Assembly: GCA_028826165.1 (NCBI GenBank)
Contig: JAPDFW010000013.1
Location: forward strand, 19,107-83,106
Origin: Anaeramoeba ignava BMAN
Lineage: Eukaryota; Protista; Anaeramoebae
Direction: 5' to 3'
DNA: 64,000 nucleotides
The position numbers were made by a program, and so were the translations under genes. The notes under the pieces are model-generated. The model saw only the letters and a program-made list of their open reading frames with translations. It did not search any database and had not been told where the DNA came from. Every line of letters starts with the position of its first letter. The stretch's first letter is position 1. Positions 32,994 to 51,375 of the stretch are shown one piece after another.

Positions 32994-33494
32994 ATGAAAA
33001 TATTTGTCACAGTTGGAACTACAAAATTTACAGAATTAATAAACATTGTAGATTCACAAGAATTTCTACAATTAATGAAAAAAAAAGGAGTAACGGAAAT
33101 AACATTACAAACAGGAACAGAAGAATTTGAACCAAAAGAATTAAAAAAAGAAACAAATTTGACAGTTAAGACATTTAAATTAGTTCCATCAATAGAAGAA
33201 TATATTGAAAAAGCAGATTTAATAATTAGTCATGGAGGCGCAGGAACTATTTTTGAAAGTCTTCGCGCAAAAAAACCGTTAATTGTTGTTGTTAATGATT
33301 CTTTAATGGATAATCATCAAACTGAACTGGCAGAAAAATTAGCGGAAGAAAAGCATCTTTTTTATTGTGAAAATTCTTCTTTTCTTCCTACTATTTTTAA
33401 AAATATTGAAATCGATGGTTTATTGCCTCTTCCTGATACTAATCCTGATAAATTCAATTCTTTTATTGATAATCATTTTAATTTGAAAATTTAA
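32994..33494 (+). CDS. ALG13: UDP-GlcNAc transferase catalytic subunit ALG13
   Basis: MKIFVTVGTTKF..ADLIISHGGAGTIFESL..KPLIVVVNDSLMDNHQTELAEKL. Confidence 0.95.
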   Translation: MKIFVTVGTTKFTELINIVDSQEFLQLMKKKGVTEITLQTGTEEFEPKELKKETNLTVKTFKLVPSIEEYIEKADLIISHGGAGTIFESLRAKKPLIVVVNDSLMDNHQTELAEKLAEEKHLFYCENSSFLPTIFKNIEIDGLLPLPDTNPDKFNSFIDNHFNLKI

Positions 33495-33905
33495 TCAATG
33501 AAAAAAAATACAAAAGTTGATTTTTTTTTTCAAGTTTTTTATTTGAAATGGAGTGTGAATTATTTCAATATTCTTTATAATAAAGCTTCATTTAAAATTA
33601 AAATTCATTTATAAAATCAAAATCAAAATTAAAATTCATTTAATAATTAAAATTCATTTATAAAATTAAAATTCATTTATAAAATTAAAATTCATTTATA
33701 AAATTAAAATTAAAATTCAAATTAAAATTAAAATATTAAAATTAAAATTAAAATTAAAATTAAAATTAAAATTAAAATTAAAATTAAAATTAAAATTAAA
33801 ATTAAAATTAAAATAATTTTGTTTTCAAAGTTTATTTCTTTTCCAAATTTTCTTTTCTAAATTATCTTTCTTCATTTTTTTTCTTTTTAATATCTTTTTT
33901 TCTTA

Positions 33906-33966
33906 CTTTGTGTTCGAAAATCTCAATCCAAAAAAAAGGTTTCTTGAGATTTTGTCATATACAAAG
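33906..33966 (-). promoter_or_regulatory. SECIS element in the 3' UTR of the SelK-like gene
   Basis: CTTTGT-at-ATGAC-AAAATCTCAA-gAAA-CC(T8)GG-a-TTGAGATTTT-CGAA-c-ACAAAG: helix I, AUGA/GA quartet, perfect 10-bp helix II, apical AAA with mini-stem. Confidence 0.9.
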
Positions 33967-34057
33967 AAAGAAAAAAAGAAAGAGAAAATCATTTTAAAAT
34001 TTTAAAAAAAAAAGAAATTACTAAAAAGGATTAAATCTGAATTAGAAAAAATCCTTT

Positions 34058-36208
34058 TTAGCAATTTCCCCCACCTCATCCACCACCACCACTAAAGAAA
34101 GAAAGTGTAGAAAATGAATTTCGTCGATTTTGTGGAATTGGTTGTTGTCTAGGTTGAGGTCTTGTTTCATCTGGTTCTTCATAAAATAAAGTTTGTAAAC
34201 TAAAAATTTATAATTAAATTTATAATTAAATTTATAATTAAATTTATAATTAAATTTATAATTAAATTTATAATTAAATTTATAATTAAATTTATAATTA
34301 TATTTATAATAAATTTATAATTAAATTTATAATTAAATTTATAATTAAATTTATAATTAAATTTATTATTATAATTATAATAAAATTAATAATTAAATTT
34401 ATAATTAAATTTATAATCAAATTTATAATTAAATTTATAATTATATTTATAATTAAATTTATAATTAAATTTAAAATTAAATTTATAATTAAATTTATAA
34501 TTAAATTTGTAATAAAATTTATAATTATATTTTATAAACAAAATTTATAATTAAATTTATAATTAAATTTATAATTAAATTTATAATTAAATTTATAATT
34601 ATATTTATAATAAAATTAATAATTAAATTTATAATAAAATTAATAATTAAATTTATAATAAAATTTATAATTAAATTTATAATTAAATTTATAATTAAAT
34701 TAATAATTAAAATTTATAATAAAAATTTAAATATATAATTAAAATTATAATTAAATTTATAATTAAATTTATAATTAAACTTATAATTAAATTTATAATT
34801 AAATTTATAATTAAATTTATAATTAAATTTATAATTAAATTTAATTAAATTTATATTTTATATAATTAAAATTATAATTAAAAATATAATTAAATTTATA
34901 ATTAAATTTATAATTATATTTTATAATTAAATTTATAATAAAAATTTATAATTAAATTTATAATTAAATATATAATTAAACTTATAATTAAAATATATAA
35001 TTAAATTTATAATTAAATTTATAATTATATTTATAATTAAATTTATAATTAAATTTATAATTAAATTTATAATTAAATTTATAATTAAATTTATATAATT
35101 AAATTTATAATTAAAATTATAATTAAATTTATAATTAAATTTATAATTAAATTTATAATTAAATTAATTAAATTTATAATTAAATTTATAATTAAATTTT
35201 ATAATTAAATTAATAATTAAATTTATAAAAAATTTATAATAAAATTTATAATTATATTTATAAACAAAATTTATAATTAAATTTATAATTAAATTTATAA
35301 TTAAATTTATAATTAAATTTATAATTAAATTTATAATTAAATTTATAATTAAATTTAAAACTAAATTTATAATAAAATTAATAATTAAATTAATAATTAA
35401 ATTTATAATAAAATTTATAATTAAATTTATAATATTTATAATTAAATTTATAATTAAATTTATAATTAAATTTAAATTTATAATTAAATTTATAATAAAA
35501 TTTATAATTAAAATATATATTTATATTTATAATTAAATTTATAATTAAATTTATAATTAAAAATATAAAATTTATAATTAAATTTATAATTAAATTTATA
35601 ATTAAATTTATAATTAAATTTATAATTAAATTTATAATTAAATTTATAATTAAATTTATAATTTATTTATAATTATATTTATAATTAAATTTATAATTAA
35701 ATTTATAATTAAATTTATAATTAAATTTATAATTAAATTTATAATTAAATTTATAATTAAAATTTATAATTAAATTTATAATTAAATTTATAATTAAATT
35801 TATAATTAAAATTTATAATTAAATTTATAATTAAATTATATTTTATAATTAAATTTATAATTAAATTTATAATTAAATTTATAATTAAATTTATAAACAA
35901 ATTTATAATTATATTTATAATTAAATTTATAATTAAATTTATAATTAAATTTATAATTAAATTTATAATTAAATTTATAATTATATTTATAATTAAATTT
36001 ATAATTAAATTTATAATTAAATTTATAATTATATTTATAATTAAATTTATATTAAAATTTATAATTAAATTTATAATTAAATTGTTTACAAAATTTTTAA
36101 AAATTGTAAAATGGCTAATAAAATGTTTTGTATTTTTGTAAAAATTCTTGATTCATTTGATTCTGTTCTTGTTTGTTGTGGAAAAACTTTTCTTCTATTA
36201 TTTTCCAT
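34058..36208 (-). CDS. SELENOK: Selenoprotein K-like (86 aa); exons 36208-36090 and 34199-34058; UGA-Sec at 34078-34076
   Basis: MENNRRKVFPQQ..RIFTKIQNILLAILQFLKIF|LQTLFYEEPDETRPQPRQQP..FSGGG-TGA-GGGNC-TAA: single hydrophobic helix with 'FLQTLF', Pro/Arg-rich tail, GGU near the C-terminus, and a downstream SECIS. Confidence 0.85.
34200..36089 (-). repeat. 1.9-kb intron composed of a 12-bp quasi-palindromic repeat (AATTTATAATTA)n
   Basis: GT at 36089 and TAG at 34202-34200 on the minus strand; the interior is almost purely the 12-mer. Confidence 0.85.
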
Positions 36209-36315
36209 TTATAAAAAAAATAATTGAAAAAAAAAATGAAAAAAATGAAAAACAAAATCATTTTGAATTTTATTTGTTTTTTTTTTTGAAAAGAAAAAAA
36301 AAGGAAAAAAATTTA

Positions 36316-36397
36316 TTTTTAATAATCATTGACTTTCAGAAAATATTCTTCCAAAGATTTCAAATATTTCCTTCATTTGTTCAACAATTATTAAAAA
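36316..36397 (-). promoter_or_regulatory. SECIS element in the 3' UTR of the SelW/Rdx gene
   Basis: TTTTTAATAATTGTTGA-acaa-ATGAA-GGAAATATT-tgAAA-TCTTTGGAAGA-ATATTTTC-TGAA-ag-TCAATGATTATTAAAAA: long helix I, AUGA/GA core, helix II, AAA apical motif. Confidence 0.88.
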
Positions 36398-36506
36398 TTG
36401 GAAAAAAAAATGTGGCTTTTATGTTGAAAGATTGTTTGAGAAATGAAAAAAGAAAAAGAAAAAGAAAGAAGAAGAAATGTTCAGTTTTTTTTTGATTTGA
36501 ATTTGT

Positions 36507-38312
36507 TTACTTTTCTTTTTCTTCTTTTTCTTCTTTTTTTTCTTTTTGAGATTCTAAATGTTTTTCAATAAGAGTAACAAGTTCTTCAGGTTCTGGATAT
36601 CTTCCTGTTTTTTTACGTGAAAAAATGAGTGTTCCATCATCAAGATGTACTTCAAACAAATATCCTGAATGTCCGTGTTTTGGAGCAACTGTATATCCTT
36701 TTTCTTTTAATCCATTAGCCACCCAAAGGTATCGTCCAAAGATACCTCATCCTATTTTAAAATTATTATTAAAATTATTATTAAAATTAATTATTATTAA
36801 AATTATTATTAAAATTATTATTAAAAATTATTATTAAAATTATTATTAAAATTATTATTAAAATTATTATTAAAATTATTATTAAATTTATTATTAAATT
36901 TATTATTAAAATTATTATTAAAATTATTATTAAAATTATTATTAAATTTATTATTAAATTTATTATTAAATTTATTATTAAATTTATTATTAAATTTATT
37001 ATTAAAATTATTATTAAATTTATTATTAAAATTATTATTAAAATTATTATTAAAATTATTATTAAAATTATTATTAAAATTATTATTAAAATTATTATTA
37101 AAATTATTATTAAAATTATTATTAAATTTATTATTAAATTTATTATTAAAATTATTATTAAATTTATTATTAAAATTATTATTAAAATTTATTATTAAAA
37201 TTATTATTAAATTTATTATTAAATTTATTATTAAATTTATTATTAAAATTTATTATTAAAATTTATTATTAAAATTATTATTAAAATTATTATTAAAATT
37301 TATTATTAAATTTATTATTAAATTTATTATTAAATTTATTATTAAATTTATTATTAAATTTATTATTAAAATTGTTATTAAATTTATTATTAAATTTATT
37401 ATTAAATGATTATTAAATTTATTATTAAATTTATTATTAAATTTATTATTAAAATTATTATTAAAATTATTATTAAAATTATTATTAAAATTATTATTAA
37501 ATTTATTATTAAAATTATTATTAAATTATTATTGAATTTATTATTAAATTTATTATTAAAATTATTATTAAAATTATTATTAAAATTATTATTAAAAATT
37601 ATTATTAAAATTATTATTAAATTTATTATTAAAATTATTATTAAAATTATTATTAAAATTTATTATTAAATTTATTATTAAATTTATTATTAAAATGATT
37701 ATTAAAATTTATTATTAAAATTTATTATTAAAATTATTATTAAAATTATTATTAAAAATTATTATTAAAATTTATTATTAAATTTATTATTAAATTTATT
37801 ATTAAAATTATTATTAAAATTATTATTAAAATTATTATTAAATTTATTATTAAAATTATTATTATATTTATTATTAAATTTATTATTAAATTTATTATTA
37901 AATTTATTATTAAATTTATTATTAAAATTATTATTAAATTTATTATTAAATTTATTATTAAATTTATTATTAAATTTATTATTAAAATTATTATTAAAAT
38001 TATTATTAAATTTATTATTAAAATTATTATATTTATTATTAAAATTATTATTTATTATTAAATTTATTATTAAAATTATTATTAAATTTATTATTAAATT
38101 TGTTATTAAAATTATTATTAAAATTATTATTAAATTTATTATTAAAATTATTATTAAAATTATTATTAAATTTATTATTAAAATAGATTGCTAATTGATT
38201 GGGGAGATTTGGTTAAATTATTAATTTTAATTGATTTTAATTTTGAGAACTTTAATTGAGATTAATTTTTGATTGTTGATTTACCTCCACAATAAGTAAT
38301 TATGACTTTCAT
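36507..38312 (-). CDS. SELENOW: Rdx-family selenoprotein (SelW-like, 90 aa); exons 38312-38285 and 36751-36507; UGA-Sec at 36749-36747
   Basis: MKVIITYCGG|-TGA-GIFGRYLWVANGL..GYLFEVHLDDGTLIFSRKKTGRYPEPEELVTLI gives a CxxU thioredoxin-like motif plus the Rdx G.FEV..L+.S+..G.+P signature; SECIS downstream. Confidence 0.9.
36752..38284 (-). repeat. 1.5-kb intron composed mostly of a 13-bp repeat (plus strand ATTATTATTAAAA / TTTATTATTAAAT)
   Basis: GTAAAT donor at 38284, TAG acceptor at 36752; repeat spans about 36760-38182. Confidence 0.85.
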
Positions 38313-38668: not shown

Positions 38669-38938
38669 ATGACTGAATCAAAAGTTGTAGTGAAGAATGT
38701 AGATATGGTAGAAGAAATGCAAAACGAGATAATTAACGAAGCATTAACGGCATTTGAGAAATTTACAGTAGAAAAAGATATAGCAGGATATTTGAAACGA
38801 GCTGCTGATAAAAAATACGGTCCTACTTTTCATGTTATTGTTGGGAAAAGTTTCGGATCTTTTGTTACTCATGAAAGCAAAAACTTTATATATTTTTATG
38901 TTGGTCAAACTGCTGTCCTTCTTTTTAAATGCGGTTAA
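38669..38938 (+). CDS. DYNLL1: Dynein light chain LC8
   Basis: VVKNVDMVEEMQ..EKDIAGYLKRAADKKYGPTFHVIVGKSFGSFVTHESKNFIYFY..LLFKCG. Confidence 0.95.
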   Translation: MTESKVVVKNVDMVEEMQNEIINEALTAFEKFTVEKDIAGYLKRAADKKYGPTFHVIVGKSFGSFVTHESKNFIYFYVGQTAVLLFKCG

Positions 38939-45525: not shown

Positions 45526-48237
45526 ATGAAATCAATTCTTTTCTTTTCCTTTTTCTTAATTTTCAATATTTACTTAATTAAATCGATTCAAAATGATCCA
45601 AAATACATTTCATCTTCTAAATCATCAAAACTAATATTAAAAGAAACAGAAACAGAAACAACAACAAAATATTATCCTTCTCTAAATGAAGTTTTTTTTT
45701 GGCGTTTAATATCTAATTTTTCATTTTCATCAAGTTTATCAGGTTTTGGATACAGTACTTATATTTATAAAGATCTTCTTGTTATTACAGCCCCTTTTGC
45801 ACGAAAAGCATTTATTTACAGATATAATGGAACAAATTTTGATCTTCAACAAACTTTGGATGGACCTTCATTTTCAACTTTTGGATATTCTGTTTCAATT
45901 TATGAAGATGTTATTGTTATTGGTGGTTATTATTCAGAAAATGCATTTATTTACAGATATAATGGAATAATTTGGAATCTTCAACAAACTTTGAGTGTAC
46001 TTTCAATTTCAGGTTTTGGATATTCTGTTTCAATTTATGAAGATGTTATTGTTGTTGGTACTTATTTTGCAAACCAAACATTTATTTACAGATATAATGG
46101 AATAGTTTGGAATCTTGAACAAACTTTGGATGAATCAGCTTTATATTTTGGATATTCTGTTTCAATTTATGAAGATGTTATTGTTGTTGGAACTTATTTG
46201 AAAATCAAACATTTATTTACAGATATAATGGAATAATTTGGAATCTTGAACAAATTTTGGATGAATCAGCTAAATATTTTGGATATTCTGTTTCAGTTTA
46301 TGGTAATGTTATTGTTGTTGGAGCTTTTGTTACAGAACGAGCATTTATTTACAGATATAATGGAATAGTTTGGAATCTTGAACAAATTTTGCATGAATCA
46401 TCTTTATGTTTTGGATATTCTGTTTCAATTTATGATAATGTTATTGTTGTTGGAGCTTATGGTCAAAATCAAACATTTATTTACAGATATAATGGAATAA
46501 TTTGGAATCTTGAACAAATTTTGAGTGAATCAGCTAAATATTTTGGATATTCTGTTTCAGTTTATGAAAATTTTACTGCTGTTGGAGCTTGGAGTGTAAA
46601 TCAAACATTTGTTTATGAATTTATACAAATTCCTCAAGTTAATATTCTTAATTGTTCATCTTTGTTTTCATCATTTGATTGTTATTGGGATAAAGTAGAA
46701 TTTATTTCAACTTTGAAATATCAAATAAATTATGGATTTAGTTGGGATTGATATTGAATCTCCAATTTTTGAAGATGGGAATGTTTATTATCAATTATTT
46801 AATTCTTCAAATTATGATAATATTACTGGAAATGAATTTTATTCAATTCAAATCAAAGTTTGTGCATCAGAAATTAAATGTGATAAACCTTCTTCTTTCA
46901 TTAATTTAACAACAAAAATTGATTCTGTAAAAGATTTACAATTAACAAATGCAAATTCTTCAATTAATGTAACTTGGAATCCTCCTAATGTTAAAATTAA
47001 TGAAGGAATTGCTCATCTTGATCATTATAACCTTTCTTATTTCAATCAATCTCAACCTAATTCAATATCTTTCGTTTCAGTTGCTAATTCTTCACTTTCT
47101 TATTTTTTGAATAATTTAAAATGTGGAAATGATTATAATATTTCAATTTGTGGATGTAGAACACCTAAATGTGAAGGAAATGATAAAGGAGAAGTTGCTA
47201 ATTCATTAATTTCATTATTATTTGAAAAAGTTGGAAATTTAACATGTTCAATTTCAAATTTAATAGATATTAATTGTAATTGGAATCAACCAATTAATTG
47301 TTCAACTCCATCTTATTATAATTTTACTTATCAATCAATTTCTCAAAATGATTCAGGAAATTATCAACCAATATCATCAAATCAACAATTTACAGCTCAA
47401 ATTCCAAATCAACAATATCAAATCAATGTATCAGCATGTAATTCAGATGGAAAATGTGGATATATTTCAACAACTTCAATTACAACTGATAATTTACCAA
47501 TAGCTCCAATAATTTATGAAACAATTTCTAAAATTGAAGAAATTGAATTTAATTTCACAAAATTAACAAATGCAAATAATTATTCAATTTCACTTAATAA
47601 TGAAACAAATTGGCAAAAATTTACATCTCTTGATTTAAGTGGAAATGAAATAATTGGAATCATAAGTGGAATATCAGGAAATGTTGAATATAATATTTCA
47701 ATTCGAGGATGTGCAGATTTAAATTGTGAAACACCTTATTTAGGATTACCAAGTTCAATTATTTCAACAAGAGCTAAATTAGGAAATATTACTACATTAA
47801 ATTGCATATCATTAATTAATGGATTTGAATGTAGTTGGGATTCATTAATTTTATCAAGTGGATTAAAAGCATATTCATTTCATTTCAATTCAATATCAAT
47901 TTGTTTATCAAAAACAACAAATTTTCATTCAGAATCAGGATTAAAAGGAGGAGAATATTATGAAATTTCAATTTATTCATCAGCTGATTCAAATTGTTTA
48001 ATTAATGAATATTCAGGAATTAATTCAAAAACATCAATTACAACATTATCTCCAACTGAATCAAAAGAAAGTTCCTCAAAAACTTCAATCATAGCTATAT
48101 CAATTCTTTTTCCTATTTTAATAACAGGAATTATTATAGTTATTATTATTATTATTAAAAAAAAACGCACTCCAAAAATCATTTTTCAAGAAGAGGACAA
48201 AGAACTTGAACCTTTAACAGACATTGAATTATTTTAA
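45526..48237 (+). CDS. Type I surface protein: signal peptide, FG-GAP-like beta-propeller, FN3-like domains, TM; copy A (indels near 46200 and 46740)
   Basis: Repeats FGYSVSIYEDVIVVGxxxxxxxFIYRYNG; FN3-like INVTWNPP..Y.ISI.GC; TM IIAISILFPILITGIIIVIIIII then KKKR. Confidence 0.85.
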
Positions 48238-48710: not shown

Positions 48711-51375
48711 ATGAAATCAATTCTTTTCTTTTCCTTTTTCTTAATTTTCAATATTTACTTAATTAAATCGATTCAAAATGATCCAAAATACATTTCATCT
48801 TCTAAATCATCAAAACTAATATTAAAAGAAACAGAAACAGAAACAACAACAAAATATTATCCTTCTCTAAATGAAGTTTTTTTTTGGCGTTTAATATCTA
48901 ATTTTTCAGGTTCAGGATATTTTGGATATTCTGTTTCAATTTATAAAAATGTTCTTGTTATTGGAACTTATTATGCAGATCAAGCATTTATTTACAGATA
49001 TAATGGAACAAATTGGAATCATGAACAAACTTTGAATGAATCAAGTTCAAATTTTGGATATTCTGTTTCAATTTATGAAGATGTTATTGTTGTTGGGACT
49101 TCTGGTGCAAATCAAACATTTATTTACAGATATAATGGAACAAATTTTATTCTTGAACAAATCTTGAATCAATCAGCTAAATATTTTGGATATTCTGTTT
49201 CAATTTATGGCAATGTTCTTGTTGTTGGTGCATATAATGGAACAATTTGGAATCAAGAACAAATATTGAATGAATCAGCTTCATATTTTGGATATTCTGT
49301 TTCAATTTATGAGAATGTTACTGTTATTGGAGCTTATTATGCCAAAAAAGTATTTATTTACAGATATAATGGAACAAATTGGAATCAAGAACAAATATTG
49401 AATGAATCAGCTTTATATTTTGGATTTTCTGTTTCAATTTATGGCAATGTTCTTGTTATTGGAGCTTGGAGTGCCAAACAAGTATTTATTTACAGATATA
49501 ATGGAACATGGAATAAAGAACAAATATTGAATGGATCAGCTTTATATTTTGGATCTTCTGTTTCAATTTATGATAATGTTATTGTTGTTGGAGCTTATGG
49601 TCAAAATCAAACTTTAATTTACAGATATAATGGAACTATTTGGAATCAAGAACAAATTTTGAATGGATCAGTTCCTTATTTTGGATATTCTGTTTCAGTT
49701 TATGAAAATTTTACTGCAATTGGAGCTTTTATTGCAAATCAAGCATTTGTTTATGAATTTATACAAATTCCTCAAGTTATTCTTGTTAATTGTTCATCTT
49801 TGTTTTCATCATTTGATTGTTATTGGAATAAAATTGAATTAGTGAATTTGAAATATCAAATCAAGTATCAGTATCGTTGGGTTGATATTCAATCTCCAAT
49901 TCTTGAAGATGATAATGTTTATTATCAATTATTTAATTCTTCAAATTATGTTAATATTACTGGAAATGAATTTTATTCAATTCAAATCAAAGCTTGTGAT
50001 GCATCATCAATTAAATGTGGTGAACCTTCTTCTTTCATTAATTTAACAACAAAAATTGATTCTGTAAAAGATTTCCAATTAACAAATGCAAATTCTTCAA
50101 TTAATGTGACTTGGAATCCTCCTAATGTTAAAATTAATGAAGGAATTGCTCATCTTGATCATTATAACCTTTCTCATTTCAATCAATCTCAACCTGATTC
50201 AATATCTTTCGTTTCAGTTGCTAATTCTTCACTTTCTTATTTTTTGAATAATTTAAAATGTGGAAATGATTATAATATTTCAATTTGTGGATGTAGAACA
50301 CTTAAATGTCAAGGAAATGATAAAGGAGAAGTTGTTGATTCATTAATTTCATTATTATTTGAAAAAGTTGGAAATTTAACATGTTCAATTTCAAATTCAA
50401 TCGATATTAATTGTAATTGGAATCAACCAATTAATTGTTCAACTCCATCTTATTATAATTTTACTTATCAATCAATTTCTCAAAATGATTCAGGAAATTA
50501 TCAACCAATATCATCAAATCAACAATTCACAGCTCAAATTCCAAATCAACAATATCAAATCAATGTATCAGCATGTAATTCAAATGATAAATGTGGATAT
50601 ATTTCAACAATTTCAATTACAACTGATAATTTACCAATAGCTCCAACAATTTATGAAACAATTTCCAAAATTGAAGAAATTGAATTTAATTTCACAAAAT
50701 TAACAAATGCAAATAATTATTCAATTTCACTTAATAATGAAACAAATTGGCAAAAATTCACATCTCTTGATTTAAGTGGAAATGAAATAATTGGAATCAT
50801 AAGTGGAATACCAGGAAATGTTGAATATAATATTTCAATTAGAGGATGTTCAGATTTAAATTGTGAAACACCATATTTAGGATTACCAAGTTCAATTATT
50901 TCAACAAGAGCTAAATTAGGAAATATTACTTCATTAAATTGCATATCATTAATTAATGGATTTGAATGTAGTTGGGATTCATTAATTTTATCAAGTGGAT
51001 TAAAAGCATATTCATTTCATTTCAATTCAATATCAATTTGTTTATCAAAAACAACAAATTTTCATTCAGAATCAGGATTAAATGGAGGAGAATATTATGA
51101 AATTTCAATTTATTCATCAGCTGATTTAAATTGTTTAATTTAATGAATATTCAGGAATTAATTCAAAAACATCAATTACAACATTATCTCCAACTGAATC
51201 AAAAGAAAGTTCCTCAAAAACTTCAATCATAATTATATCAATCCTTTTGTCTATTTTAATAACAGGAATTATTATAGTTATTATTGTTATTATTAAAAAA
51301 AAACGCACTCCAAAAATCATTTTTCAAGAAGAGAACAAAGAACTTGAACCTTTAACAGACATTGAATTACTTTAA
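48711..51375 (+). CDS. FG-GAP/FN3 surface protein copy B (indel near 51140)
   Basis: 810-aa ORF plus frameshifted TM and tail ending LTDIELL*. Confidence 0.85.

Follow-up and report, generated by a model that had tools for sequence, protein, structure and literature searches.

A stretch of 64,000 nucleotides from the protist Anaeramoeba ignava BMAN (contig JAPDFW010000013.1, positions 19,107 to 83,106 of the forward strand; "the window" below means this whole stretch) carries on its minus strand a small two-exon gene between positions 36208 and 33906. The gene would splice to a protein of 86 residues, by a count of 39+1+40+1+5 codons, in which an in-frame TGA near the 3' end is proposed to encode selenocysteine (Sec). 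A selenocysteine insertion sequence (SECIS) element lies within the gene's 3' untranslated region (UTR). The reading favored here, with moderate confidence, is a separate nuclear gene of Anaeramoeba ignava encoding a SelK/SelS-type selenoprotein that is most likely a very divergent SelK. The gene and its SECIS consist of the following features.

36090..36208, minus strand: exon 1, with the ATG at 36208; 39 full codons plus 2 nt, M-E-N-N-R-R-K...L-K-I
34200..36089, minus strand: intron of 1,890 nt, GT...AG, 0.6% GC
34079..34199, minus strand: coding part of exon 2 before Sec; end of the helix, P/R/Q-rich linker, S-G-G-G-G
34076..34078, minus strand: proposed selenocysteine codon, an in-frame TGA with Gly codons on both sides
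34058..34075, minus strand: post-Sec codons G-G-G-N-C and the stop TAA (34060-34058)
33906..33966, minus strand: SECIS, matching Rfam SECIS_1 (RF00031) with 31.9 bits
33966-33962 with 33910-33906, minus strand: SECIS helix I
33958-33955 and 33915-33914, minus strand: SECIS core, AUGA and the 3' GA, respectively
33953-33944 with 33926-33917, minus strand: SECIS helix II, 10 perfect pairs
33942-33940, minus strand: apical AAA of the SECIS, unpaired, 12 nt after the core
33939-33938 with 33929-33928, minus strand: SECIS mini-stem CC/GG
33831..33836, minus strand: AATAAA polyadenylation-like signal, about 70 nt 3' of the SECIS; a pattern only

The frame of exon 1 is closed by a TAA immediately 5' of its ATG, which has an A at -3 and a G at +4. 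The first 25 residues of the protein and the larger part of a hydrophobic helix come from this exon. The intron begins with the donor GTAAAC at 36089 and ends with the acceptor TTTTTAG, whose last base is 34200; almost all of it is a 12-nt AT repeat in 158 copies (34204-36083, found with Tandem Repeats Finder). Exon 2, read in frame from 34198, gives L-Q-T-L-F-Y-E-E-P...S-G-G-G-G, 40 codons followed by the TGA. Its coding part is present in one copy in the genome. The single Cys of the protein is its C-terminal residue. A first-pass annotation had described two exons joined at 36090/34199 across 1.9 kb of 12-mer repeat, with an 86-residue product; all of these were recovered at the stated coordinates, and the proposed ending, a Gly run followed by UGA, GGGNC and TAA, is read in the exon 2 frame with the TGA at 34078-34076. 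Its statement that the gene is completely absent from the list of open reading frames (ORFs) is roughly right, except that the exon 1 ORF is listed (36086-36208, 40 aa) and a truncated form of the gene is contained in a public fused gene model.

The SECIS begins 91 nt past the TAA and 110 nt past the UGA, in agreement with the earlier description of an element with a perfect 10-bp helix II about 90 nt downstream. Its E value with Rfam SECIS_1 is 0.0014 over the 4 kb searched and 0.022 over the full 64-kb window, and its fold has a minimum free energy of -22.2 kcal/mol (z -3.5). The element shows the structural hallmarks of a eukaryotic SECIS: an AUGA...GA core, a helix II of the 10-12 bp class, an AAA about 12 nt further on and a 3' UTR position. 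The window has only two SECIS_1 matches, and about 100 nt 5' of each, on its own strand, is a frame interrupted by a TGA. On a scale where 32.2 bits corresponds to an E value of 0.003 in 42.8 Mb, the genome-wide expectation for a SECIS_1 match of 31.9 bits is about 0.004. Because of this low expectation, and because the element lies 91 nt behind a G-rich frame interrupted by TGA, its occurrence by chance is very unlikely.

The composition of the exons points in the same direction. GC content is 20% in exon 1 and 35% in exon 2, compared with 10-15% in the flanks; the part of exon 2 before the Sec codon has 34.7% GC versus 15% in the UTR. The 15 nt 3' of the TGA have 60% GC, a value attained by only 0.4% of the 15-mers in the window. 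G-rich codons run on up to the TAA, a coding signal past the UGA. Since both of the SECIS_1 matches in 64 kb stand behind TGA frames, and since the post-TGA codons are GC-rich, the gene is more than a chance arrangement.

The rest of the genome contains other selenoprotein genes and the machinery for Sec. The 42.8-Mb assembly was scanned with SECIS_1, with 121 of 564 candidates scored, and with a second model built from six elements of the A. ignava genome, with 150 of about 137,000 candidates scored. At least eight good SECIS elements were found, including those of the SelK-like gene and of its upstream neighbor, and all eight have the AUGA-12 nt-AAA spacing. Their alignment shows covariation, with pairing in 81.7% of cells and double changes in 14 of 15 pairs; none of 500 shuffles is as high and slid controls are far lower, the alignment being one fitted to a SECIS model built in part from the element of the SelK-like gene. 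At least five of the seven other candidates are located behind recognizable selenoprotein frames. A tRNA-Sec (L030, C85:71115-71202; 70.3 bits) and a two-exon gene for SepSecS (L032/L033, C115:320484-322222; 404 bits) were also identified. The custom SECIS model also gave 25.9 bits for two identical 51-nt hairpins on the minus strand of the window, one at 47887-47937 and one 3.1 kb away at 51024-51074; they were rejected as SECIS elements since they have no AAA and no TGA-interrupted frame 5' of them, and they look like part of a local duplication.

Among the other selenoprotein genes is a large thioredoxin reductase (L002, G000:C2:448278-451340), whose frame ends T-G-C-U-G-stop and whose SECIS (C2:449778-449840, 32.2 bits) lies downstream past a microsatellite stretch. 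Four Rdx/SelW-like genes have a SECIS, one of them the upstream neighbor; the others, each with a SECIS behind it, are L001 (C137:507625-507686), L005 (C1:510441-510498) and L040 (C66:505578-505638). In such genes the UGA lies at the CxxU site or next to it; for at least two of the four it occupies the site itself. The C137 and C1 copies have a microsatellite intron after ...C-G-G, and for the C1 and C66 copies an in-frame UGA was seen in exon 2. A sequence on C143 (L028), G-G-U-G-S-L-C-G-Y-Q-K-K-T-G-K-Y-P, may be a further Rdx/SelW-like gene. In addition, two small frames with a good SECIS behind them have Sec as residue 3: M-C-U-M-L-F-A-C-C-F-G... (L003, C73:332204-332265) and M-A-U-L-L-I-G-G-V-M-L-L-L-S-A-C-C-G... 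(L039, C117:41378-41437), the latter with another in-frame TGA near its end. They were not recognized as any known family and may represent a new small selenoprotein family. In the window, at 34200-36089 and 36760-38280, and at the L001, L002, L003 and L005 loci, introns and 3' UTRs are lengthened by kilobase-long arrays of AT microsatellites with a period of 6-12 and as little as 0.6% GC. Arrays of this kind pull tiny genes apart and conceal them from ORF-based calling.

Taken together, the in-frame UGA, the 3' UTR SECIS and the finding of tRNA-Sec and SepSecS bear out the first-pass proposal that a selenoprotein gene served by a SECIS of its own is hidden here, and the locus is very probably a real selenoprotein gene. 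If the TGA were instead a plain stop, the protein would end G-G-G-G, or the frame might not be a gene at all, and the SECIS would be a chance hairpin in AT-rich DNA, which yields many hairpins. A number of facts lean that way and count against the favored reading. The SECIS score is below the Rfam gathering cut-off of 35 bits. The sequencing runs searched for the stretch were DNA-type contig runs of one organism, with no RNA run among them, and no relative of the gene turned up in the homologue searches. The contigs of four runs, compared over 33830-34215, cover only 33830-33955 and no part of exon 2, have no joints or loose ends and are uninformative. The TGA is read from assembly data, and the sole run with all of the sampled words may itself be the source of the assembly. 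Set against these are the low genome-wide expectation, the correct placement of the element, the G-rich codons past the TGA and the GC content of the exons far above that of the flanks. The geometry, too, is identical to that of the seven other candidates, and several of those behind clear selenoprotein frames have lower SECIS_1 scores, 21-32 bits. That the locus encodes no selenoprotein, in either of these forms, is improbable.

The locus is represented in the public record by a single protein, KAJ5080130.1 (A0A9Q0LYE8; P0001 below), annotated as "selenoprotein t" of Anaeramoeba ignava and spanning window positions ~34079-38312. It was the sole match of exon 1 in a phmmer search of 1.84 billion representatives, with 92% identity. 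P0001 begins as the upstream Rdx-like gene without its Sec codon, matching Pfam Rdx with 34.4 bits, reaches the last Lys codons of that gene and then continues at codon 6 of the SelK-like exon 1. From there it uses the identical exon 1/exon 2 junction and ends S-G-G-G-G at the Sec TGA. The shared splice junction supports the gene structure independently, the support being computational, not experimental. The upstream part corresponds to the neighboring gene.

36328-38312, minus strand: upstream SelW/Rdx-like selenoprotein gene

Exon 1 of the neighbor ends ...Y-C-G-(G) at ~38284, followed by the donor GTAAAT, similar to that of the SelK-like gene, and exon 2 starts near 36750 with the rest of the Gly codon and then a TGA. 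The CxxU site is thus split, because the microsatellite intron lies between the parts of the Gly codon, ahead of the TGA. Ahead of the SelK-like ATG, the neighbor has a stop codon (TAA, near 36507), a SECIS (36328-36385, 26.4 bits) and an AATAAA (36318-36313) of its own. Its paralogues on other contigs likewise end with a stop and then a SECIS.

Could the public model be right, either as one transcript and protein or as an alternative isoform, with the upstream SECIS spliced out and the downstream SECIS serving the UGA codons? KAJ5080130.1 does join both frames in frame, and the gap between the genes is short, ~120 nt from the neighbor's SECIS to the SelK-like ATG, with the neighbor's polyA signal only ~100 nt from that ATG, a spacing that tells against two separate genes. 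Comparison of P0001 with the DNA however shows what the fusion needs: the AG within T-G-A-G must serve as an acceptor, which skips the neighbor's Sec codon, and the GTAA of the neighbor's stop must serve as a donor. The SelK-like frame has its own ATG, closed 5' by the TAA. Because the fusion needs these two splice sites, and because the neighbor has its own stop, SECIS and AATAAA and its paralogues end alike, we read the locus as two genes. The SelK-like gene is very probably separate from its neighbor, a single fused gene is very improbable, and KAJ5080130.1 is a mis-prediction fusing two selenoprotein genes, each with its Sec codon missed or avoided. Further out, the locus is flanked by ORFs on the plus strand at 32994-33494 (166 aa) and 38669-38938 (89 aa), which we take to resemble ALG13 and an LC8-type dynein light chain, respectively.

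The relation to SelK was assessed with Pfam SelK_SelG (PF10961), which has a curated cut-off of 23.3 bits. The query was P0001:89-163, the spliced product minus its first 5 and last 6 residues. SelK_SelG was the only Pfam family matched, with 16.5 bits over HMM positions 19-68 (E 0.013 library-wide, ~5e-7 for one model). Three trimmed versions of the query still match the family, with 14.2-16.8 bits. What matches is the helix together with its polar juxtamembrane flank, residues 19-45 aligning on HMM positions 19-45 with 14.2 bits; the G-rich tail alone gave no SelK_SelG match in the trimming test. The protein has a single helix, with a best 19-residue Kyte-Doolittle window of 1.58, and a tail in which P, R, Q, S and G are abundant. 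The Sec stands in the context G-G-G-G-U-G-G-G, which contains the SelK-type G-G-U-G. A search for the G-G-U-G pattern gave 22 places in the genome, fewer than in the reversed control, and only at this locus is the surrounding protein SelK-like. No canonical SelK was found elsewhere in the genome among the SECIS candidates scored above. A six-frame genome scan with PF10961 also found none, but the controls of that scan could not give a match either.

Against SelK stand both profile and motif. The scores are all under the cut-off, and exon 1 or exon 2 alone matches nothing in Pfam up to E 10. SelK members end U-G, U-G-R or U-G-P-K, and the N-terminal motif Y-[IV]-S-x-G-x-V...W-R is present in all aligned SelKs (PMC2375036, supplement 2). 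The motif is absent from the exon 1 product, HMM positions 1-18 are unmatched, and the Sec is sixth from the C-terminus as opposed to second to fourth in SelK. The hydrophobicity of the helix is borderline. Homologue searches add to this side. Exon 2 and the P0001 segment, each compared with a set of 5.8 billion proteins, gave no homologue; exon 1 gave none among the 1.84 billion representatives except the public model itself, and JGI metagenome contigs gave none. Searches of the ESM Atlas by features and by structure found no homologue, the PDB gave chance matches only (E 0.7), and exact look-ups of the encoding contigs found nothing.

These points would be expected if the gene, though truly one for a selenoprotein, were not homologous to SelK. 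It would then encode a small membrane selenoprotein specific to the lineage, which arrived at the SelK/SelS layout (helix, disordered tail, C-terminal Sec) by convergence and has a Sec-x4-Cys motif of its own. A match of helix to helix can owe much to hydrophobic composition, and the SelK_SelG match may come partly from it. The same match, on the other hand, is to one family only, is stable on trimming and keeps its register for 27 positions, those of the polar juxtamembrane part among them; the Sec has the SelK motif around it, and the genome scans above, which scored a fraction of the SECIS candidates, gave no other SelK candidate. Convergence is a doubtful explanation by our estimate, and homology to SelK is rather likely. 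The SelK_SelG check suggested by the first-pass annotation thus came out weakly positive (14-17 bits), and its term "SelK-like" is sustained by the layout, the G-G-U-G and the sole sub-threshold family match, but not by the N-terminal motif or by any homologue beyond the public model. By our reading the protein functions as a SelK/SelS-type protein and is probably, though not demonstrably, a divergent SelK.

The partner Cys had at first been presented as a departure from SelK. This was overstated: in the SelKs of Drosophila, Chlamydomonas, Ostreococcus tauri and Dictyostelium a Cys precedes the Sec by two to nine residues (PMC2375036, supplement 2). A downstream, terminal Cys is still unusual, and the new feature of the tail is the position of the Cys only, downstream of Sec and the last residue. 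A precedent for a selenenylsulfide between Sec and Cys is found in thioredoxin reductase, and we know of no selenoprotein whose chain ends in a resolving Cys placed downstream of the Sec. A further precedent is the Cys174-Sec188 selenenylsulfide of SelS (PMC3628699). An intramolecular Sec-x4-Cys selenenylsulfide in the A. ignava protein is chemically plausible by analogy, and it is put forward tentatively.

The favored reading, a divergent SelK, leads to the following proposal for how the protein might work. The UGA at 34078-34076 would be recoded to Sec through the SECIS 110 nt downstream. The protein would be anchored in the endomembrane, probably the endoplasmic reticulum, by its single helix, with the disordered P/R/Q/G-rich tail in the cytosol. 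The redox end G-G-U-G-G-G-N-C might then cycle between the selenol/thiol form and an intramolecular Sec-Cys selenenylsulfide, like SelS and the Cys-Sec pairs of thioredoxin reductase. If Sec insertion failed, the product would end Gly-Gly, as do truncated animal SelK and SelS. In mammals the Gly-Gly end of truncated SelK and SelS acts as a degron (PMC12035522).

Of the known proteins, SelK (PF10961; the human protein, Drosophila G-rich and Dictyostelium XP_646897.1) is alike in its ~90 residues, in a single helix that is placed in the N-terminal half and contains polar or charged residues, in a disordered P/R/G-rich tail with G-G-U-G at the C-terminal end, in a 3' UTR SECIS and in the Gly-Gly truncated product. 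To these is added the weak but specific HMM match over the helix, which is below the cut-off. SelK differs in having the N-terminal motif and a Sec second to fourth from the end, whereas the A. ignava protein lacks the motif and has its Sec sixth; in non-vertebrate SelKs the Cys is upstream of the Sec, whereas here the only Cys is the last residue, downstream. Dictyostelium, with a selenoproteome of five members including SelK (PMC2375036), has a canonical SelK, unlike the A. ignava protein.

SelS/VIMP is alike in its single-pass membrane layout, its disordered G-rich tail and a truncated form that ends Gly-Gly. Its penultimate Sec is bonded to Cys174, 14 residues upstream, whereas the Cys of the A. 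ignava protein is downstream, and no sequence similarity between the two was detected. SelS also has a coiled coil and a p97-binding region, in a chain of ~189 residues. Large thioredoxin reductase, which in the A. ignava genome is the L002 gene, ends in G-C-U-G and is alike in carrying a Sec/Cys pair on a flexible C-terminal tail; selenenylsulfide cycling is established in the animal enzyme and would be expected by analogy in the A. ignava protein. The pair is an adjacent C-U on a large flavoenzyme in the one case and a U-x4-C on a tiny membrane protein without a catalytic domain in the other. Lineage-specific small selenoproteins of the Plasmodium Sel1/Sel4 type have a membrane helix and a C-terminal Sec in a SelK/SelS-like layout, with no clear sequence homology. 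They belong to another lineage and are likened to the A. ignava protein by layout.

Metamonads are for the most part considered Sec-poor or devoid of selenocysteine. Spironucleus has a SelW1 homologue for which no canonical SECIS was found (PMC2874811), and the Sec pathway has been reported in Preaxostyla (PMC10703272). For Anaeramoeba the sole mention is a tRNA-Sec reported in A. pumila (bioRxiv 10.64898/2026.04.11.717937); no description of Anaeramoeba selenoproteins was found in the literature searched. A. ignava, an amoeba, is a free-living anaerobe with canonical SECIS elements and several selenoprotein genes, a SelK-like gene among them. The analysis corrects the public record, in which KAJ5080130.1 stands for two genes, and adds to an undescribed selenoproteome. 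As a naturally occurring tail of the SelK type in which the Cys that would resolve the Sec stands on its opposite side, it offers selenoprotein biochemistry a simple test case for an intramolecular selenenylsulfide mechanism in SelK-type tails. A bolder possibility, which we regard as unlikely, is that the protein founds a family of its own, restricted to Anaeramoeba and not descended from SelK, of membrane selenoproteins active through their tails, with a small Sec-x4-Cys-COOH selenenylsulfide ring at the C-terminus. If true, it would add to a selenoproteome of at least eight genes, unexpectedly rich for an anaerobic metamonad.

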